Positions 20,801 to 38,800 of a stretch of 64,000 bases of DNA are shown piece by piece; position 1 is the first letter of the stretch; the number at the start of each line of letters is the position of its first letter. The translations under genes and the position numbers were made by a program. This stretch comes from Macrostomum lignano (Eukaryota). The DNA lies in NCBI GenBank assembly GCA_002269645.1, contig NIVC01000089.1, positions 558,001 through 622,000 on the forward strand, read 5' to 3'. Below the pieces are notes generated by a model. It ran no database searches and was not told the DNA's origin. It saw only the letters and a program-made list of their open reading frames with translations.

Positions 20801-23800
20801 ACAGACAGACAGACAGACAGACAGACAGACAGACAGACACACAGACAGACAGACAGACAGACAGACAGACAGACAGACAGACACACAGACAGACAGACAG
20901 ACAGACAGACAGACAGACACACAGACAGACAGACAGACAGACAGACAGACAGACAGACAGACAGACAGACAGACAGACAGACAGACAGACACTCTTACGA
21001 CTGTCTGTGTGTTTAGCGGGACCTGAGTTATGTTAATGCGTTACGTGGACCACGCAATTCCGGTTAAAAAATAGAGTCTGTTTTGACAACGCGAAAGGCT
21101 AGCTAGGGTTATCTTTTTGTTAACTTGACGGAATAGCCAGTTCGTGGAAACTGTGGCGGTTCACTAACTACGTTTTGGGGACCGGGTTAGGTGGACCGCA
21201 AAAAAACAGTTGGTTTAGTTAGACCTCTTTCTTTGTAGAAAATTTATGAGTTTCAAACTGTTATTTTGGGCTAATTAAAACAGAAATTCTCAAGAAACAG
21301 AAGATAAAAAAGGTTTACGATTCCATTTTATTAAAAAAACCCTGGTTCAAACGAATTTATTTAGCTTTACTAAACTATGGGTTAAACTGCATTAGTTACG
21401 AAAGAAAAACAACGCACACTCAGGGATACAAGAAGTTGAAGCATTTTTAAAACGGCAACAGTTATTAAAATGGAAATTGTATCAAACAGATATAAGAAAT
21501 TGAAGCATTTTGAAAATAAATACCGAATCATTTCGCTTGCCTTAACGCAAAAGATTTAAACCTAATTAAACTAACTGCAAAGTCATTGAAACTAATTTAA
21601 GTCCGGAAGTACATTCTTAAACTACACGTTTAACAAACTTAGGATTGCATTAGTTAAAAAAGTCATAGGGAGTACAAGAAGTTGAAGCATTTTTAAAAGG
21701 GCAACAGTTATTAAAATGGAAATTGTATAAAACAGATACAAGAAATTGAAGCATTTTTAAAACGGCGACAGTTATTAAAATGGAAATTGTATCAAACAGA
21801 TACAAGAAATTGAAGCATTTTTAAAACGGCGACTCGCATTCCCCCCCCCTACACGTTTTTTGCACCCCCAGCTTAAAAATTGGCGCCCCTCATACTCAGT
21901 TTGGCGTCCCAAACTTGGACCGCCCCCAAAAGCCATCGCTATGCTATCGATAGTGAACAGGTATTTCTTGTCAGCTAAACTAATAGATGCTTTTTAATCT
22001 TAGTGTTAGCAATCATAAAGCGTTTAGTCACAAAATGCCGCGTTTTTTCATTTCATTGAAAAACTTCGTTTTTATTTTATGGATCGATCGTGACTGGAGT
22101 GCAGGTTCGCGTGCTTTTAGCTCTCCAAGGGCTGCAAAACCAGGTACTTTGCCGTCTTCGATCTTTTCTATCGCGCGGTTAATTGCCTCATTTTCGTCTT
22201 TGTTCCACGCAATGTGCTCCTGAATTAGTTTTTTCTTGACTTCTGAAATGGATTGAAGTAACTGAAATCAACTTTGGTTTTTTTCTTCCCCCCAGTTCCC
22301 ATTTTGTCCTTACCTTCCGAACTAGGAGCGCTTTTGTCCTTCTGTGGGTCCTCTTGTCCGGGTCCTGGCTCGCTTTTGTCCTTCTGTGGGTCCTCTTGTC
22401 CGGGTCCTGGCTCGCTTTTGTCCTTCTGTGGGTCCTCTTGTCCGGGTCCTGGCTCGCTTTTGTCCTTCTGTGGGTCCTCTTGTCCATGTCCTGGCTCGCT
22501 TTTGTTATTAGTCGTTGTTGCTGTCGCACCCTTTGGCTTAGTCGTCCTTCGAATCCGCCTTTCGTTTGCTCTAGCTTTCTGCACTTTTCTGGTTTTTTTC
22601 GTCGGTTGGTAGTCTGAATCGTCTTTGTCTACTTCGCTTTCATATTCATCTGAGTCGAGCACAGCTAATCGATTCTTCTTTTTTTCGACTTGCTTGATGG
22701 ACAGGGGGGCTCCGCGAAAGTCGACAGAACCTTCGTGATAAATTGACTCGTCCTCAAATTCCTTAGCTTGGATACGAGCTCCATTATTCTCAGGAGGTGC
22801 TTGACTCTTTTGGTCACCACGTTTTAATTCTCGAGCCTGTGAGCCTATTGAGGCTTCCACATCACCGGATTCGTTCAAATCATCTTTTTTTGCATCTGAC
22901 TTATCGTCAATGTCATAGTCAATTTCGATGTCGTTAACATCAATCTCTTCGATAGTTTTGCCTTTAAGCTGGTCGAATCTACCGGCCTCGATAGCCAGAA
23001 GTAGCTTGCCTACTTTAGCAAGCTCAATAGTGTTTTCATGCAATCGATAGAAATTATGGTGAACATTAAGGCTATGTCCAAGATGGTTGGAGAGCCATCC
23101 GAGCTCATTTTCTCTCATTTCAAGGATCTGAGAGACAGTGGCAATGTATTTTCGAAGGTTGGTCGAAGATAGACGAGCAGGGAACTGGAGCCCTTGACAA
23201 CTGGAGACAACATTTGTGCGCGCAACGAATGGGGATATATATCCCAAACTTCCACTACTGCAGAATACGTAAGGACTTGAAGCGTGGTGTCTTGTGCGAA
23301 TGAGCTCATCGATAATTTCAGCAATCTCATTCGAAACTAGCAGAGGAACCGGTCGCTGTGCTCTCTTACCTCGAACATTAACGATAGTCAACCGGTAAAG
23401 CATTTGCTTTTCTAATTCACTTAGCGCAGATAATGTTGTATCATCAACATCTTTGCATGATCTTGCTTTCTGCCACGCCGAAACTCGCAGCTTGAAGGGC
23501 TCAGACGCCCGGCGCTTGTTGAAAATAGACAAACGAATCGCAACATATTCGGCCACCTCTTTCCAGTAAGAAGGGCTGCTTTTTAGCTTTTCCGTGTCGA
23601 TGTGGCTTAAATATTCGTTAATGTGCTTCGTGATTAACTGAATGTCGCTAGTTAACGGCAATGTCTGACCCTTGTCAATTTTTCTTTCTTTCAAGGACAA
23701 AAGTGCAATCGAAGATATTTTACGGCTCCATGATGTTTCATACAGAGTGATGAAGTTGCGTCGCTCCTGAGCTACTTCGGGCATTTCGCATTTCAGGGCA

Positions 23801-35800: not shown

Positions 35801-38800
35801 GAGAGCTGCTTCAGTTGTGTCTGTAGGTTAGATAGGCCTTGCAATTAGCTATTTTGAGATCATCAAACGAAACTCACTTTTCTGGACTCGGTGTCGATGG
35901 TTTTGCGAGCAGACTGTCGGTTTTCACCAGGCGATGCGGCCTTCTTCGATTTTGCAGTGGCTTTTTGCGTCGCAGTTTTTTTAGGTTTTACCTTAGGCTT
36001 AGGCTTGGCGTCCTTTTTGTTTTTTTTTCGGGTCATTGTATCTTGCTTGGCACAATAAATTTATCTATAGATGAAACTTAGAGTATGGAAAATAATGTTA
36101 GACCTAATAAGTGTGAATAGAATCAGTTCTAATTTATAAAACTGTCTGTGTGTGGTCTAACTACGCCATGGTTTACGGGGACCACCCGCTTAGACATTAT
36201 ATATCCCTCTCTCTACAGTCTTACCTTCAGAACCCTTGCGGGTTTCCTATTGGCTGAGGTCGGTCCCATCGTTGGGGTTGATCTTTCCTCCTAAGTGTTA
36301 ACCAGCCAATTATAGAAAGGGAGGTCTGTCTGTCTGTCTGTTCCAACCCTATACTCCTGCACATGTGTTTACGTGGACCAAACAGACAGTTAGTGTTAGG
36401 CTGACTGTTAATGCGTTCTTAGTTTTACTGGGACCGCAATCAAGTCGACCTTTTGCTAGAGAGTCAGAGACCCGATCGCTAGCTAAAAGGCCCTTCTTAA
36501 TTGCGTCCTCTTGATCAAATCTTTTGCATGTACATGTATGAATTGTCCTTTTCAATTAGGTAAATTGCATCTTCAACTTTGCACTTGAAAGGCTGCAGCT
36601 TAGGATCTTCTTCTTCCAACATTGGAGGAGGATAGAACAGGATATCCCATAGTGTTTAGGATAGAATTGGCAAGCACTTAATTCATGAAGTTGCTATTTT
36701 CTTCTTGTGTAATGGTAGAGCCTCAGAAATTCGCATTTACACAGTGTGGCTATCAAGGACCACTGGGAGTTCTTGAGAAGTCATTGAAGAATACTATTTA
36801 AGCTTCACTTAAATATCTTTCTTGTCTCGGAGTCTTTATCGTTTGATCTGGTTAGCGAATTGGATTTCTTTACGTTGGTGTCTTACTCTGTGAGTCTGTG
36901 CTCAGAGTACGATACCGGAATTGCTGGAACTGAGCTAATTAAATGGAGTTTAAAGTTTACTATATAAAATTCATTTCGCATACGAGGTTTCAGAATTTTT
37001 AATTAACCTGCGCACCTACTTGAATGTCAAAGAACTGAACGCATATTGTTTTAAAGCCAGTAGCGGTCATAATATGATGCCAACATAGCCCTTTGTTCGT
37101 AAGGTAATGATCTGTAAAAAATTCAGTTTTGCATTGAATCTATGCTTAATAACTGCTATACACAAACAGACACAAACAGACATAAACAGACACAAACAGA
37201 CGATTTCGAAAAATTTTCTGAAATTTTTCGGTTTACGTGGACCAGACTCGCTCGGTTTAGGTAGACCAGGCTGGAGGTCCAGCTAAACTGAAATGCAAAT
37301 AACTTTGGCAAAATCCATGCTAGACATCCCAAAATTGCTTAAGCCTTTCTTGACCCGCCTGACATTAATGTGAGATCCTCATCAACGTCTTAACCCCACC
37401 AGAGACAAAATTATTTGGTGGTCCACCTAAGTGGTCTACCTACACCGGTTGGTCCAGCTAACGAGGCTACTGAACTTCCAAAAAGTCCACGTAAACACAC
37501 AGACAGTAGAACAGACAGACAGACACACAGACAGACAGACAGACAGACAGACAGACAGACACACAGACAGACAGACAGACAGACAGACAGACAGACACAC
37601 AGACAGACAGACAGACAGACAGACAGACAGACAGCAAAAAGACTATGAGACACAGATAAACAGACACGAAGACATTGAGTACAGAGCCACGCTTTGAGAC
37701 CTTAAATTGAGATCTTAAATTAATTTGGCTCACCTAATTTTGAAAATACTGTTTTGGTGTTGGATCGGTTGTCTTTGTTTAATCAGTTAATTCATGAATC
37801 TGTGTCTTGGTGCGTCGATCTTATCGATATGAGCTGAATTTATATTAATAAGGCTCTTTCTCTTTAATTATGCACTGCATCAATTATAGTTGGTGTTGAT
37901 GGTACTTTTCCGTTTCAATTAATTTCAGTGCCACACCTTCTAGACATTGGGCGGCGTCTTATAAATTTGCTGAGTGGCCTTTTTAGTTAAAGTTGGAGGT
38001 TGTGTGCACCCTAACGCACTTTAGGCGACATTGTCACACAACCTGCGAGAGGCATTACTGCCCATTCCGCCGACTCCCCTGAGCAGGCACACAAGCGCAA
38101 GGATACGTACGCAGTCATACTCACAGGCACACACTCACACAGGAGTGTACAGCGGCCCTAACTTTATTTATCGTTAGTCATGTACACTTCACTGTGCCTT
38201 GGGGGTTGGGCCTCAAGGCCGTTAATTGCACGAGCAGAGCCAAGCCGAGATTCCAATTTAGTCCCGGCCAGATTAATGTGACTGCACTGGTAATCGAGCC
38301 TGGGCGCTGGAATGTAAGAGCCCTACTAGTTATCTAGATAGCTACAATCCTTGACAAAGAGAGCGTCATCCAGCGGGTCACGTGACCACCGAAAATGAAA
38401 TTTCGAATGTCTAGTATGGCACATTTCTCTTCAAAAGTTTAAGGCGAGATGTGCTGCTTCTACTCAGTGTTCAAAATAATTGTCATCTTATCTACTTGTA
38501 CGTACTCCAAAGCGTCCTTTTTTATCGGTTCAGCTATAATTTTTTTAATTTCGTTTTTCTATTCAGTTTTTTGTCTAATTTATGAATGTTAATCTTGGTA
38601 ATTGGCTTGGCAATAATTGGTGACTCTCCAATGTCAACCAGACAACTAGAGCGTCGCATTGTAAACAGCCCGACCCTCCCGAACCTTCTCGCCCTCAGAC
38701 GATGGTCATCAACCCTGTAGCCACCGCTGGCCCGCCGCCTGCCAAGATCAGCCGCATTATGGATCCTGCCAGCTTCCAGCCCGCTGCTCCTGGCAGCATG

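Follow-up and report, generated by a model that had tools for sequence, protein, structure and literature searches.

A DBF4 cassette in frame with a predicted tyrosine recombinase in the single gene of a probable Crypton-like transposon of the flatworm Macrostomum lignano

A stretch of 64,000 nucleotides from contig NIVC01000089.1 of the flatworm Macrostomum lignano (assembly GCA_002269645.1), referred to in the following as the window, was analyzed. It harbors a putative mobile element bounded by (GTCT)n microsatellites and carrying a single gene, which is located on the minus strand. The predicted product of this gene combines a cassette resembling DBF4, the regulatory subunit of Cdc7/DDK, with a C-terminal module featuring two zinc fingers and a predicted tyrosine recombinase domain, both parts being embedded in or adjoining an array of near-identical repeat exons. 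The features of the element are compiled in Table 1.

Rebuilding of the gene bore out all coordinates, AG acceptors, and GT donors of the eleven exons proposed in a preliminary description of this DNA. As stated there, these exons join to one open frame of 5,055 nucleotides (nt), or 1,684 codons, with a single terminal stop; the 3' end of that model, however, was wrong. Exon 11 ends at position 22314 with the donor G/GTAAGG (slashes mark splice junctions) and is followed by a 71-nt intron (22313-22243), the previously proposed tail GKDKMG...SRKN representing read-through of this intron. The additional exon 12 codes for 71 amino acids (aa) that match the UniProt entry A0A1I8J1L2 and the protein P0001, and the C-terminus of the closest paralogous family (P0005), termed the sister family below, is homologous to it; no Pfam match was obtained for this tail. 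The corrected gene comprises 12 exons and 1,726 aa, with its stop at 22028. All ten junctions hold one frame, the whole 12-exon path is open, and an in-frame stop is located a few codons upstream of the ATG at 36036.

Public protein models agree with individual parts of this gene. The junction TESRK/VCDRDGD of exon 10 was found in the NCBI model PAA93368.1 (BOX15_Mlig000236g2), A0A1I8J1L2 and this NCBI model share an identical recombinase part with the window gene, and A0A1I8HXN8 and A0A1I8FWK5 an identical DBF4 part, while no database entry contains the full intact fusion. The gene architecture is considered to be well supported. In addition, an in-frame 42-nt tandem repeat (22329-22532; 4.2 copies) was detected in exon 11, encoding 14-aa repeats in the C-terminal tail of the recombinase; the same repeat is present in a second copy of the element on contig NIVC01000029.1 (L001).

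Table 1. Features of the element and its gene in the window (position 1 is the first letter of the window).
Feature	Position	Strand	Remarks
Whole element	20991-37512	-	About 16.5 kb including a nested 1.66-kb Tc1/mariner; bounds from homology to L001; all GGTCCACNTAAC copies inside
3' flanking microsatellite	19351-20990		About 1.6 kb; (GACA)n on the plus strand, equal to (GTCT)n on the gene strand
3' terminal inverted repeat	20998-21024	-	AGGTCCCGCTAAACACACAGACAGTCG, then TAAGAGT, then (GTCT)n
Exon 12, newly added	22028-22242	-	Conserved C-terminal tail; TGA at 22030-22028
Exon 11	22314-24491	-	Second zinc finger, helical domain, recombinase catalytic domain, acidic tail, 42-nt coding repeats
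Exon 10	24580-24970	-	Acidic linker and first C2H2-like zinc finger
Repeat exons 9 and 8 with minisatellite introns	25712-25488, 27151-26927	-	Exon reconstruction
DBF4 cassette	27498-28526	-	Exon 6 (28526-28380), 114-nt intron, exon 7 (28265-27498); aa 345-649
Repeat exons 2-5 with minisatellite introns	35470-35246, 30746-30531, 29906-29691, 29252-29037	-	Intron 2 houses nested insertions
Intronic 71-bp minisatellite arrays	25218-35191	-	2-8 units each; every unit has GGTCCACCTAAC, the same motif as the subterminal sites
Exon 1	35878-36036	-	ATG and lysine-rich N-terminus; tail homologous to the repeat-exon tails
5' terminal inverted repeat	37483-37509	-	CTACTGTCTGTGTGTTTACGTGGACTT
5' flanking microsatellite	37513-37634		120 bp; (ACAG)n on the plus strand, equal to (GTCT)n on the gene strand

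The claim that the unit is a mobile element held up, as deduced from its defined ends, from unrelated flanks, and from the sister family with the same layout. Its inverted ends are imperfect, with 22 of 27 bases matching, compared to 21 of 25 in the sister locus L002, and are conserved between both families. Each of the four copies examined has the core TGTGTGTTTRCGTRGAC exactly once, at its 5' end, and is flanked on both sides by direct (GTCT)n stretches of 3 to several hundred units. The second copy, L001, is more than 99% identical over window positions 20978-37674 and has nothing in common with the window outside of them; its DBF4 exon 7 is frameshifted. In L001, the (GTCT)n stretch covers 409 bp on the 5' side and only three units on the 3' side, followed directly by unrelated sequence. 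A third context is represented by A0A1I8JFG5 from an older assembly, which continues from the last exon into a neighboring gene missing at the window and at L001. An origin of the window copy and L001 as paralogues of a whole-genome duplication was rejected, the flanks sharing no similarity at E 1e-10.

The sister family, Mlig016835, is 56% identical in the core and was examined at two loci, L002 and L003 (NIVC01001364.1). Both feature (GTCT)n bounds, unrelated flanks, and homologous inverted ends and subterminal motifs, and L002 is located in an intron of an Ank/ARM gene. In total, three contexts with unrelated flanks were found for the window family and two for the sister family, and the status as a mobile element appears well supported by these comparisons. 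Within the element, neither a reverse transcriptase nor an RNase H nor another enzyme gene was found, the long open reading frames (ORFs) in 20991-37512 comprising the gene exons and a nested Tc1/mariner element only. The latter (31520-33178, minus strand) is 1.66 kb long, resides in intron 2, and contains two ORFs with a Sleeping Beauty-type helix-turn-helix and DDE_3; only the window copy carries it. Being missing from L001, it is regarded as a recent nested insertion. A 97-aa ORF resembling the C-terminal dimerization motif of hAT transposases (33627-33920, minus strand), which may be a hAT fragment, was also detected in intron 2 and is present in L001 as well. Single-base frameshifts in homopolymers affect L001 (same assembly) at two sites, one within the DBF4 exon (9911-9914) and the other at about 16.9 kb in its last exon, and shorten the NCBI model at both ends. 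These frameshifts are likely long-read errors, and they call for caution in any census of copies.

The preliminary description had further assigned the C-terminal module to the tyrosine recombinases and had named Phage_integrase among the profiles with which the joined protein should be checked. The assignment stood, on the basis of fold matches and conserved catalytic residues, whereas the profile gave no match: neither Pfam Phage_integrase nor DUF3504 was found in the window protein, and no recombinase was recovered in PDB sequence and profile searches. Weak matches to Phage_integrase were obtained for two of 18 relatives (best E 0.021). Since the Pfam and PDB sequence searches remained empty, the recombinase call rests on the predicted fold and on motif conservation.

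For the corresponding searches, a 573-aa core served as query, the full C-terminal query being swamped by low-complexity words (two matches). HMMER recovered 5,998 cluster representatives at E<=1e-3, of which 941 were found at E<=1e-30. A typical relative covers the whole module of ~560 aa at 30-36% identity, and the relatives include 'uncharacterized' proteins from fish and frogs, from a brittle star, and from bivalves, beetles, and a coral. In alignments of 12-39 relatives, the motifs LFNKRRxGE, GKRxRxVP, STxLRKYIAT, and HLGHxxxVHxxFYR were near-invariant. The catalytic residues of the window protein are R1257 (FNKRRASEP), K1305 (in a GKR hairpin), R1376 (STNLRKY), H1402, and Y1411, the last two in the canonical H-x8-Y spacing; R, K, R, H, and Y are near-invariant in 39 relatives, corresponding to five of the six canonical residues. 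Two C2H2-like fingers and a helical region upstream of the catalytic domain are conserved with it as one block.

At the structural level, XerH and XerA were the sole confident PDB matches of the AlphaFold2 (AF2) model of the core (573 aa; predicted local distance difference test, pLDDT, 80). The AF2 model of the domain only (312 aa, pLDDT 70) matched XerA (probability 1.00), a bacterial topoisomerase IB, an integrase of methicillin-resistant Staphylococcus aureus (MRSA), and an integron integrase; it is less confident than the core model, yet yielded cleaner recombinase matches. Overall, Foldseek probabilities for the confident PDB matches ranged between 0.80 and 1.00 (0.97-1.00 for XerH/XerA), with E-values of about 3e-3 to 0.2. 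In BFVD, a library of viral structures, the named proteins matched with confidence were a hytrosavirus recombinase (probability 1.00), several VLF-1 proteins, and integrases of phages. The identification as a tyrosine recombinase is considered well supported by the modeled fold together with the conserved residues.

The DBF4 segment reported previously proved to be real. As proposed, the zf-DBF profile was run on the joined protein and gave a match above its cut-off (E 9.1e-15; 54.9 bits compared to a cut-off of 24.8), spanning profile positions 1-45 of 45. This motif C (aa 539-584) aligns to yeast Dbf4 (7PT6) and human DBF4 (4F99) at E 2e-6 with all four C, C, H, H ligands aligned, and with an identity of 40-50% over ~47 residues. 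The putative motif M (aa 490-508) aligns to human DBF4 LKKPFVKVEDMSQLYRPFYL in 4F99 as a sub-threshold stretch within a significant match. For the region of motif N, Pfam BRCT yielded E 0.008 and 16.8 bits, which is under the cut-off of 21.3, and a weak alignment to yeast Dbf4 residues 144-184 was obtained. The putative motifs N and M and motif C are arranged in canonical order, motif C alone passing its family threshold. The cassette resembles the cellular DBF4/ASK/Dfp1 proteins (the regulatory subunit of Cdc7/DDK; 4F99, 7PT6) in its CCHH zf-DBF motif C, which is preceded by the weakly matching, putative BRCT-like motif N and motif M in the same order. Unlike these proteins, it comprises 305 aa only, lies in the middle of a 1,726-aa protein, and is part of a transposon with repeat exons on either side.

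Both ends of the cassette are in phase 0. Moreover, homology to a repeat-exon end extends over the last ~60 nt of exon 7, its donor, and the next intron, indicating an in-frame fusion of the cassette with the repeat array in the DNA itself. Since both ends are in phase 0 and the splice sites of the repeat exons are uniform, isoforms containing DBF4 are expected alongside others that lack it. The cassette is complete and open in the window copy, in A0A1I8HXN8, and in A0A1I8FWK5, where motif C with its four zinc ligands follows the putative motifs N and M.

The six repeat exons are near-identical, in phase 0, and rich in Arg, Ser, and Lys. Exons 2, 8, and 9 are 225 nt long and exons 3, 4, and 5 are 216 nt long, the splice contexts being identical (CCTAG/GAGCC...AGAAAA/GTGAGTTTCG), and the tandem unit consists of an exon plus a 71-bp minisatellite intron. 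Because these exons are near-identical and share the same flanks, their openness represents one observation rather than six. The 216-nt exons are distinguished from the 225-nt exons by a 9-nt indel that preserves the frame and by a block of 60 nt with many substitutions, the flanking intron being almost identical, and this combination of an in-frame indel and exon-limited divergence is the pattern expected of coding constraint. The possibility that the repeat exons are merely an open satellite was considered unlikely in view of these two features, of splice sites that follow the consensus, and of the 56%-identical sister element, in which exons and minisatellites are arranged alike. The number of repeat exons varies among copies, from six in the window to about 25 units in L003. 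In the latter (10001-46224), the array of repeat exons and minisatellites has grown to this size with a period of ~1.2-1.3 kb, the gene covers 36 kb, and the annotated protein uses few of the exons.

The 12-bp motif GGTCCACNTAAC was found in 47 copies in the window, compared to 0.88 expected, and 47 out of 47 are located inside the element. Two copies lie near the 3' end on the gene strand, two lie inverted at the 5' extremity, and the remainder represent the cores of the minisatellite units on the gene strand. In the sister element, related motifs occur in the subterminal regions and in 83-85-bp intronic minisatellites. From this distribution, we infer that the motif may be the recognition sequence of the element's own zinc-finger recombinase. 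Together with its neighboring bases, the motif reads GGTCCACCTAACCTACAGACAC; within this stretch, CCTAACCTA amounts to almost two repeats of the TTAGG telomere type, and the complement of the GTCT repeat found in the flanks comes after it.

The N-terminal part of the family was compared across relatives. In the sister's complete NCBI model, a chromodomain is followed by repeat exons and the recombinase, the chromodomain being placed where the window element has DBF4. In a survey of 39 relatives with long N-terminal extensions, a SET domain was detected in 10 (fish, poison frogs, and the brittle star Amphiura), and a tandem BRCT (oyster Saccostrea), an OTU protease domain, and a chromodomain (the M. 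lignano sister element) in one each. A SET fragment belonging to the same 90% cluster as one of the SET-bearing fish proteins (Brachyhypopomus) was clearly KMT5A/SETD8-like (E 1.7e-28 against KMT5A structures vs. 6.5e-16 for the next SET family). The occurrence of SET, chromodomain, BRCT, and OTU at one N-terminal position indicates that this slot behaves as exchangeable for chromatin and replication modules. DBF4 was absent from the sister element and from the best 150 recombinase relatives, and it appears to be a lineage-specific occupant of the N-terminal slot of the recombinase family. RefSeq models of SET-recombinase proteins (P0047, P0051, P0065, P0067, P0077, P0109, P0115, P0123, and P0131) are multicopy within species of teleosts, poison frogs, and a brittle star. 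One SET-recombinase cluster at 90% identity extends across Ranitomeya, Phyllobates, and Anomaloglossus, suggesting very recent activity, horizontal transfer, or strong conservation.

Several lines of evidence bear on the translation of DBF4 together with the recombinase. The preliminary description had regarded DBF4 as an internal module with neither a stop of its own before the donor nor a nearby ATG after its acceptor. No usable Met exists in exons 8-10; intron 9 contains an in-frame ATG. Before aa 900, Met residues occur only at aa 1, 421, and 602, none being encoded by exons 8 and 9, and the Met at aa 900 (exon 10) lies inside the first conserved zinc finger, so that exons 8-10 cannot start an intact recombinase. 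Among the public gene models, PAA93368.1 spans the exon 7 tail of DBF4, four repeat exons, and the recombinase; A0A1I8HXN8 links DBF4 exons 6 and 7 to a repeat exon; and A0A1I8JFG5 links repeat exons, DBF4 exon 6, a garbled exon 7, and the recombinase. Taken together, these three models join DBF4, repeat exons, and recombinase. The start of PAA93368.1 (MTHHD) was considered as a sign of a separate recombinase transcript and dismissed: L001 has a -1 frameshift in a poly-A run 90 nt upstream, and MTHHD represents the first Met after it, hence providing no argument for a separate start. Co-translation of DBF4 and the recombinase in at least one isoform is judged somewhat more probable than not, the single polypeptide being a prediction.

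The interpretation of the whole unit as a Crypton-like transposon with a single 12-exon gene containing an in-frame DBF4 is favored with a moderate degree of confidence, and several observations weigh against it. The Foldseek E-values (2e-2 to 3e-3) and the pLDDT of 70 for the catalytic domain are modest, and the His of the canonical HxxR is replaced by Thr in the window protein and by Thr or Ser family-wide. Regarding DBF4, BRCT and motif M score below their family thresholds, the cassette, with its two phase-0 ends, can be skipped by splicing, and several copies have a damaged exon 7, which is frameshifted in L001, lacking the zinc finger in A0A1I8JFC0, and garbled in A0A1I8JFG5, with the recombinase intact in all of them. 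This damage could reflect either relaxed constraint on DBF4 or homopolymer errors of long reads. Regarding translation, the public gene models may be partly ab initio. At 14 codons ahead of exon 10, intron 9 offers an in-frame ATG that is used by the WormBase-derived A0A1I8J1L2, so that an internal promoter could yield a recombinase without DBF4. Read-through of the repeat-exon donor ends after four codons (GTG AGT TTC GCT TGA), which makes a DBF4-only protein by intron retention possible. Finally, the annotation of L001 contains a separate antisense 77-aa 'gene' across the DBF4 exons, suggesting a separate or fragmented transcript model there.

The last three of these observations also favor the most serious alternative, namely that DBF4 is cargo: separate proteins would be produced, one by way of an internal promoter or a spliced-leader acceptor close to exon 10 and the other through termination within introns 7-9, and DBF4 would be a passenger that has an effect in trans or none. 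Trans-splicing of spliced leaders occurs in M. lignano, which is in line with this scenario. Nevertheless, it is regarded as unlikely, given that exons 8-10 lack a usable Met and ten junctions hold one frame, that three independent models bridge DBF4, repeat exons, and recombinase, that the truncated start of PAA93368.1 is explained by the frameshift, that the DBF4 exon continues in frame into the tail of a repeat exon, and that the relatives consistently carry an N-terminal module on the same polypeptide.

Less probable still is that the cassette is a decaying fragment of a host gene, captured into the repeat-exon array in the manner of Pack-MULE or Helitron elements, neutral or skipped, and without a role in transposition. 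That it was found neither in the sister element nor among the 150 best relatives, the exon 7 damage next to an intact recombinase, and the skippable phase-0 design are all compatible with such a decay, and the copies are more than 99% identical, so that selection is not measurable. On the other hand, three sequences, including the window copy, keep the complete open cassette, the lesion of L001 lies in a homopolymer of a long-read assembly with a like error elsewhere in the gene, and the same slot is filled by intact chromatin or replication modules in many lineages. That the unit is no transposon at all and represents a host gene (the worm's DBF4 fused to or adjoining a domesticated recombinase) copied by genome and segmental duplications, with microsatellites as breakpoints, is very improbable despite the recent whole-genome duplication of M. 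lignano and the limitation to three contexts, because the flanks are wholly unrelated from the exact base where (GTCT)n starts, the sister family has the same ends, motifs, and (GTCT)n at two further unrelated sites, one of them in the Ank/ARM intron, the catalytic residues are intact, and the wider family is multicopy in many genomes.

Assuming the favored transposon with its DBF4-recombinase gene, a mechanism can be proposed. The recombinase would bind the inverted ends and the repeated 12-bp motif, and the element would be excised as a circle, the junction of which would consist of the right terminal inverted repeat (TIR-R), a short spacer, (GTCT)n, and the left one (TIR-L). Reintegration would proceed by strand exchange within a genomic (GTCT)n, leaving (GTCT)n of variable length on both sides. 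In cells, motifs M and C of DBF4 bind and activate Cdc7, and DDK docks on MCM2-7. By analogy, the DBF4 part would most likely tether the recombinase to Cdc7 and to licensed or firing origins, or would put the recombinase under DDK control, recombination being timed or targeted relative to replication. A link of the DBF4-recombinase to Cdc7/DDK, S phase, or meiosis, as suggested by the preliminary description, may exist. KMT5A is the writer of H4K20me1 and promotes origin licensing, which makes a replication theme shared with the SET-bearing relatives plausible, if speculative. The broadest version of the proposal, according to which a metazoan-wide family uses its N-terminus as a slot for origin and chromatin regulators and the DBF4-recombinase recruits Cdc7 or docks on MCM, with excision from and reintegration into (GTCT)n timed to replication, is offered as a tentative idea that we rate as rather doubtful.

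If true, such timing would let a conservative 'circle' transposon gain copies. The target choice of Cryptons and their gain of copies despite a cut-and-rejoin chemistry are open questions, for which replication coupling would be a testable answer; both the Cdc7 activator inside the recombinase gene and the KMT5A-like SET at the same position in relatives point in this direction. The element offers defined ends, a candidate binding motif, and a microsatellite target in a flatworm amenable to transgenesis, and its recombinase exposes a very large unannotated family of about 6,000 'uncharacterized' clusters in fish, frogs, echinoderms, molluscs, insects, and cnidarians. Literature searches returned no description of a DBF4-recombinase or SET-recombinase element, and nothing on Macrostomum combined with Crypton or with DBF4. 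To judge from these searches, DBF4 placed in frame before an element's own tyrosine recombinase appears to be a combination described nowhere.

The element resides in very repeat-rich DNA. An intact Ty3/gypsy-type pol ORF of 1,297 aa (47579-51472, plus strand), encoding protease, reverse transcriptase, RNase H, and integrase, represents a long terminal repeat (LTR) retrotransposon at a distance of 10 kb. Long tandem arrays dominate the remainder of the window (736-5484, 8402-8893, 9514-11594, and 38820-39674), among them one of ~4.7 kb with register shifts of ~35 bp, one of ~2 kb (9.5-11.6 kb) with open frames on both strands, and one made up of 36 units of 24 bp.

Compared to known systems, the element shares with DIRS, Ngaro, and PAT elements the use of a tyrosine recombinase by a eukaryotic mobile element; those elements encode their own reverse transcriptase and RNase H and possess split or inverted long terminal repeats, whereas the window element has neither. 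Chromoviruses with their integrase-chromodomain fusions and SETMAR resemble it in uniting a transposition enzyme with a chromatin reader or writer in one polypeptide, which biases where or whether the enzyme acts. They differ in that their enzymes are DDE integrases or transposases, and SETMAR (SET plus mariner transposase) is a host domestication. We know of no transposition enzyme fused to a replication-initiation factor such as DBF4.

In endogenous nimaviruses, zinc-finger-bearing tyrosine recombinases specific for telomere repeats insert large elements into host microsatellites (PMC10871703). However, these are viral genomes of 200-300 kb that target (TAACC)n, and no DBF4 or chromatin module has been reported for them. 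No nimavirus protein was returned by the BFVD search with the recombinase model.

The closest counterparts are the Crypton DNA transposons (Goodwin et al. 2003; Kojima & Jurka 2011, PMC3212892). These are likewise eukaryotic, encode a tyrosine recombinase as their only enzyme, and lack a reverse transcriptase. They carry direct repeats at both ends, which are thought to be the crossover substrate and correspond here to a microsatellite rather than to a 4-6-bp repeat, and excision as a circle with site-specific reintegration, proposed for them in the Goodwin model, is proposed for the window element, too. Some Crypton groups also carry accessory domains (GCR1_C, C48 peptidase), and for CryptonF in Chlamydomonas, recombination at the target motif was observed together with a gain of copies that was left unexplained (PMC9977147). 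Most of the features defining Cryptons were found in the window element, which would accordingly be termed a Crypton-like DNA transposon, a designation set by these features. In contrast to the animal Cryptons (CryptonA/I), which were described without terminal repeats or a C-terminal domain, it has inverted ends of ~25 bp and a C-terminal tail, and it goes beyond Cryptons in its two zinc fingers, its 12-exon gene with repeat exons, the Thr in place of the His of R-H-R-Y, and its accessory module.

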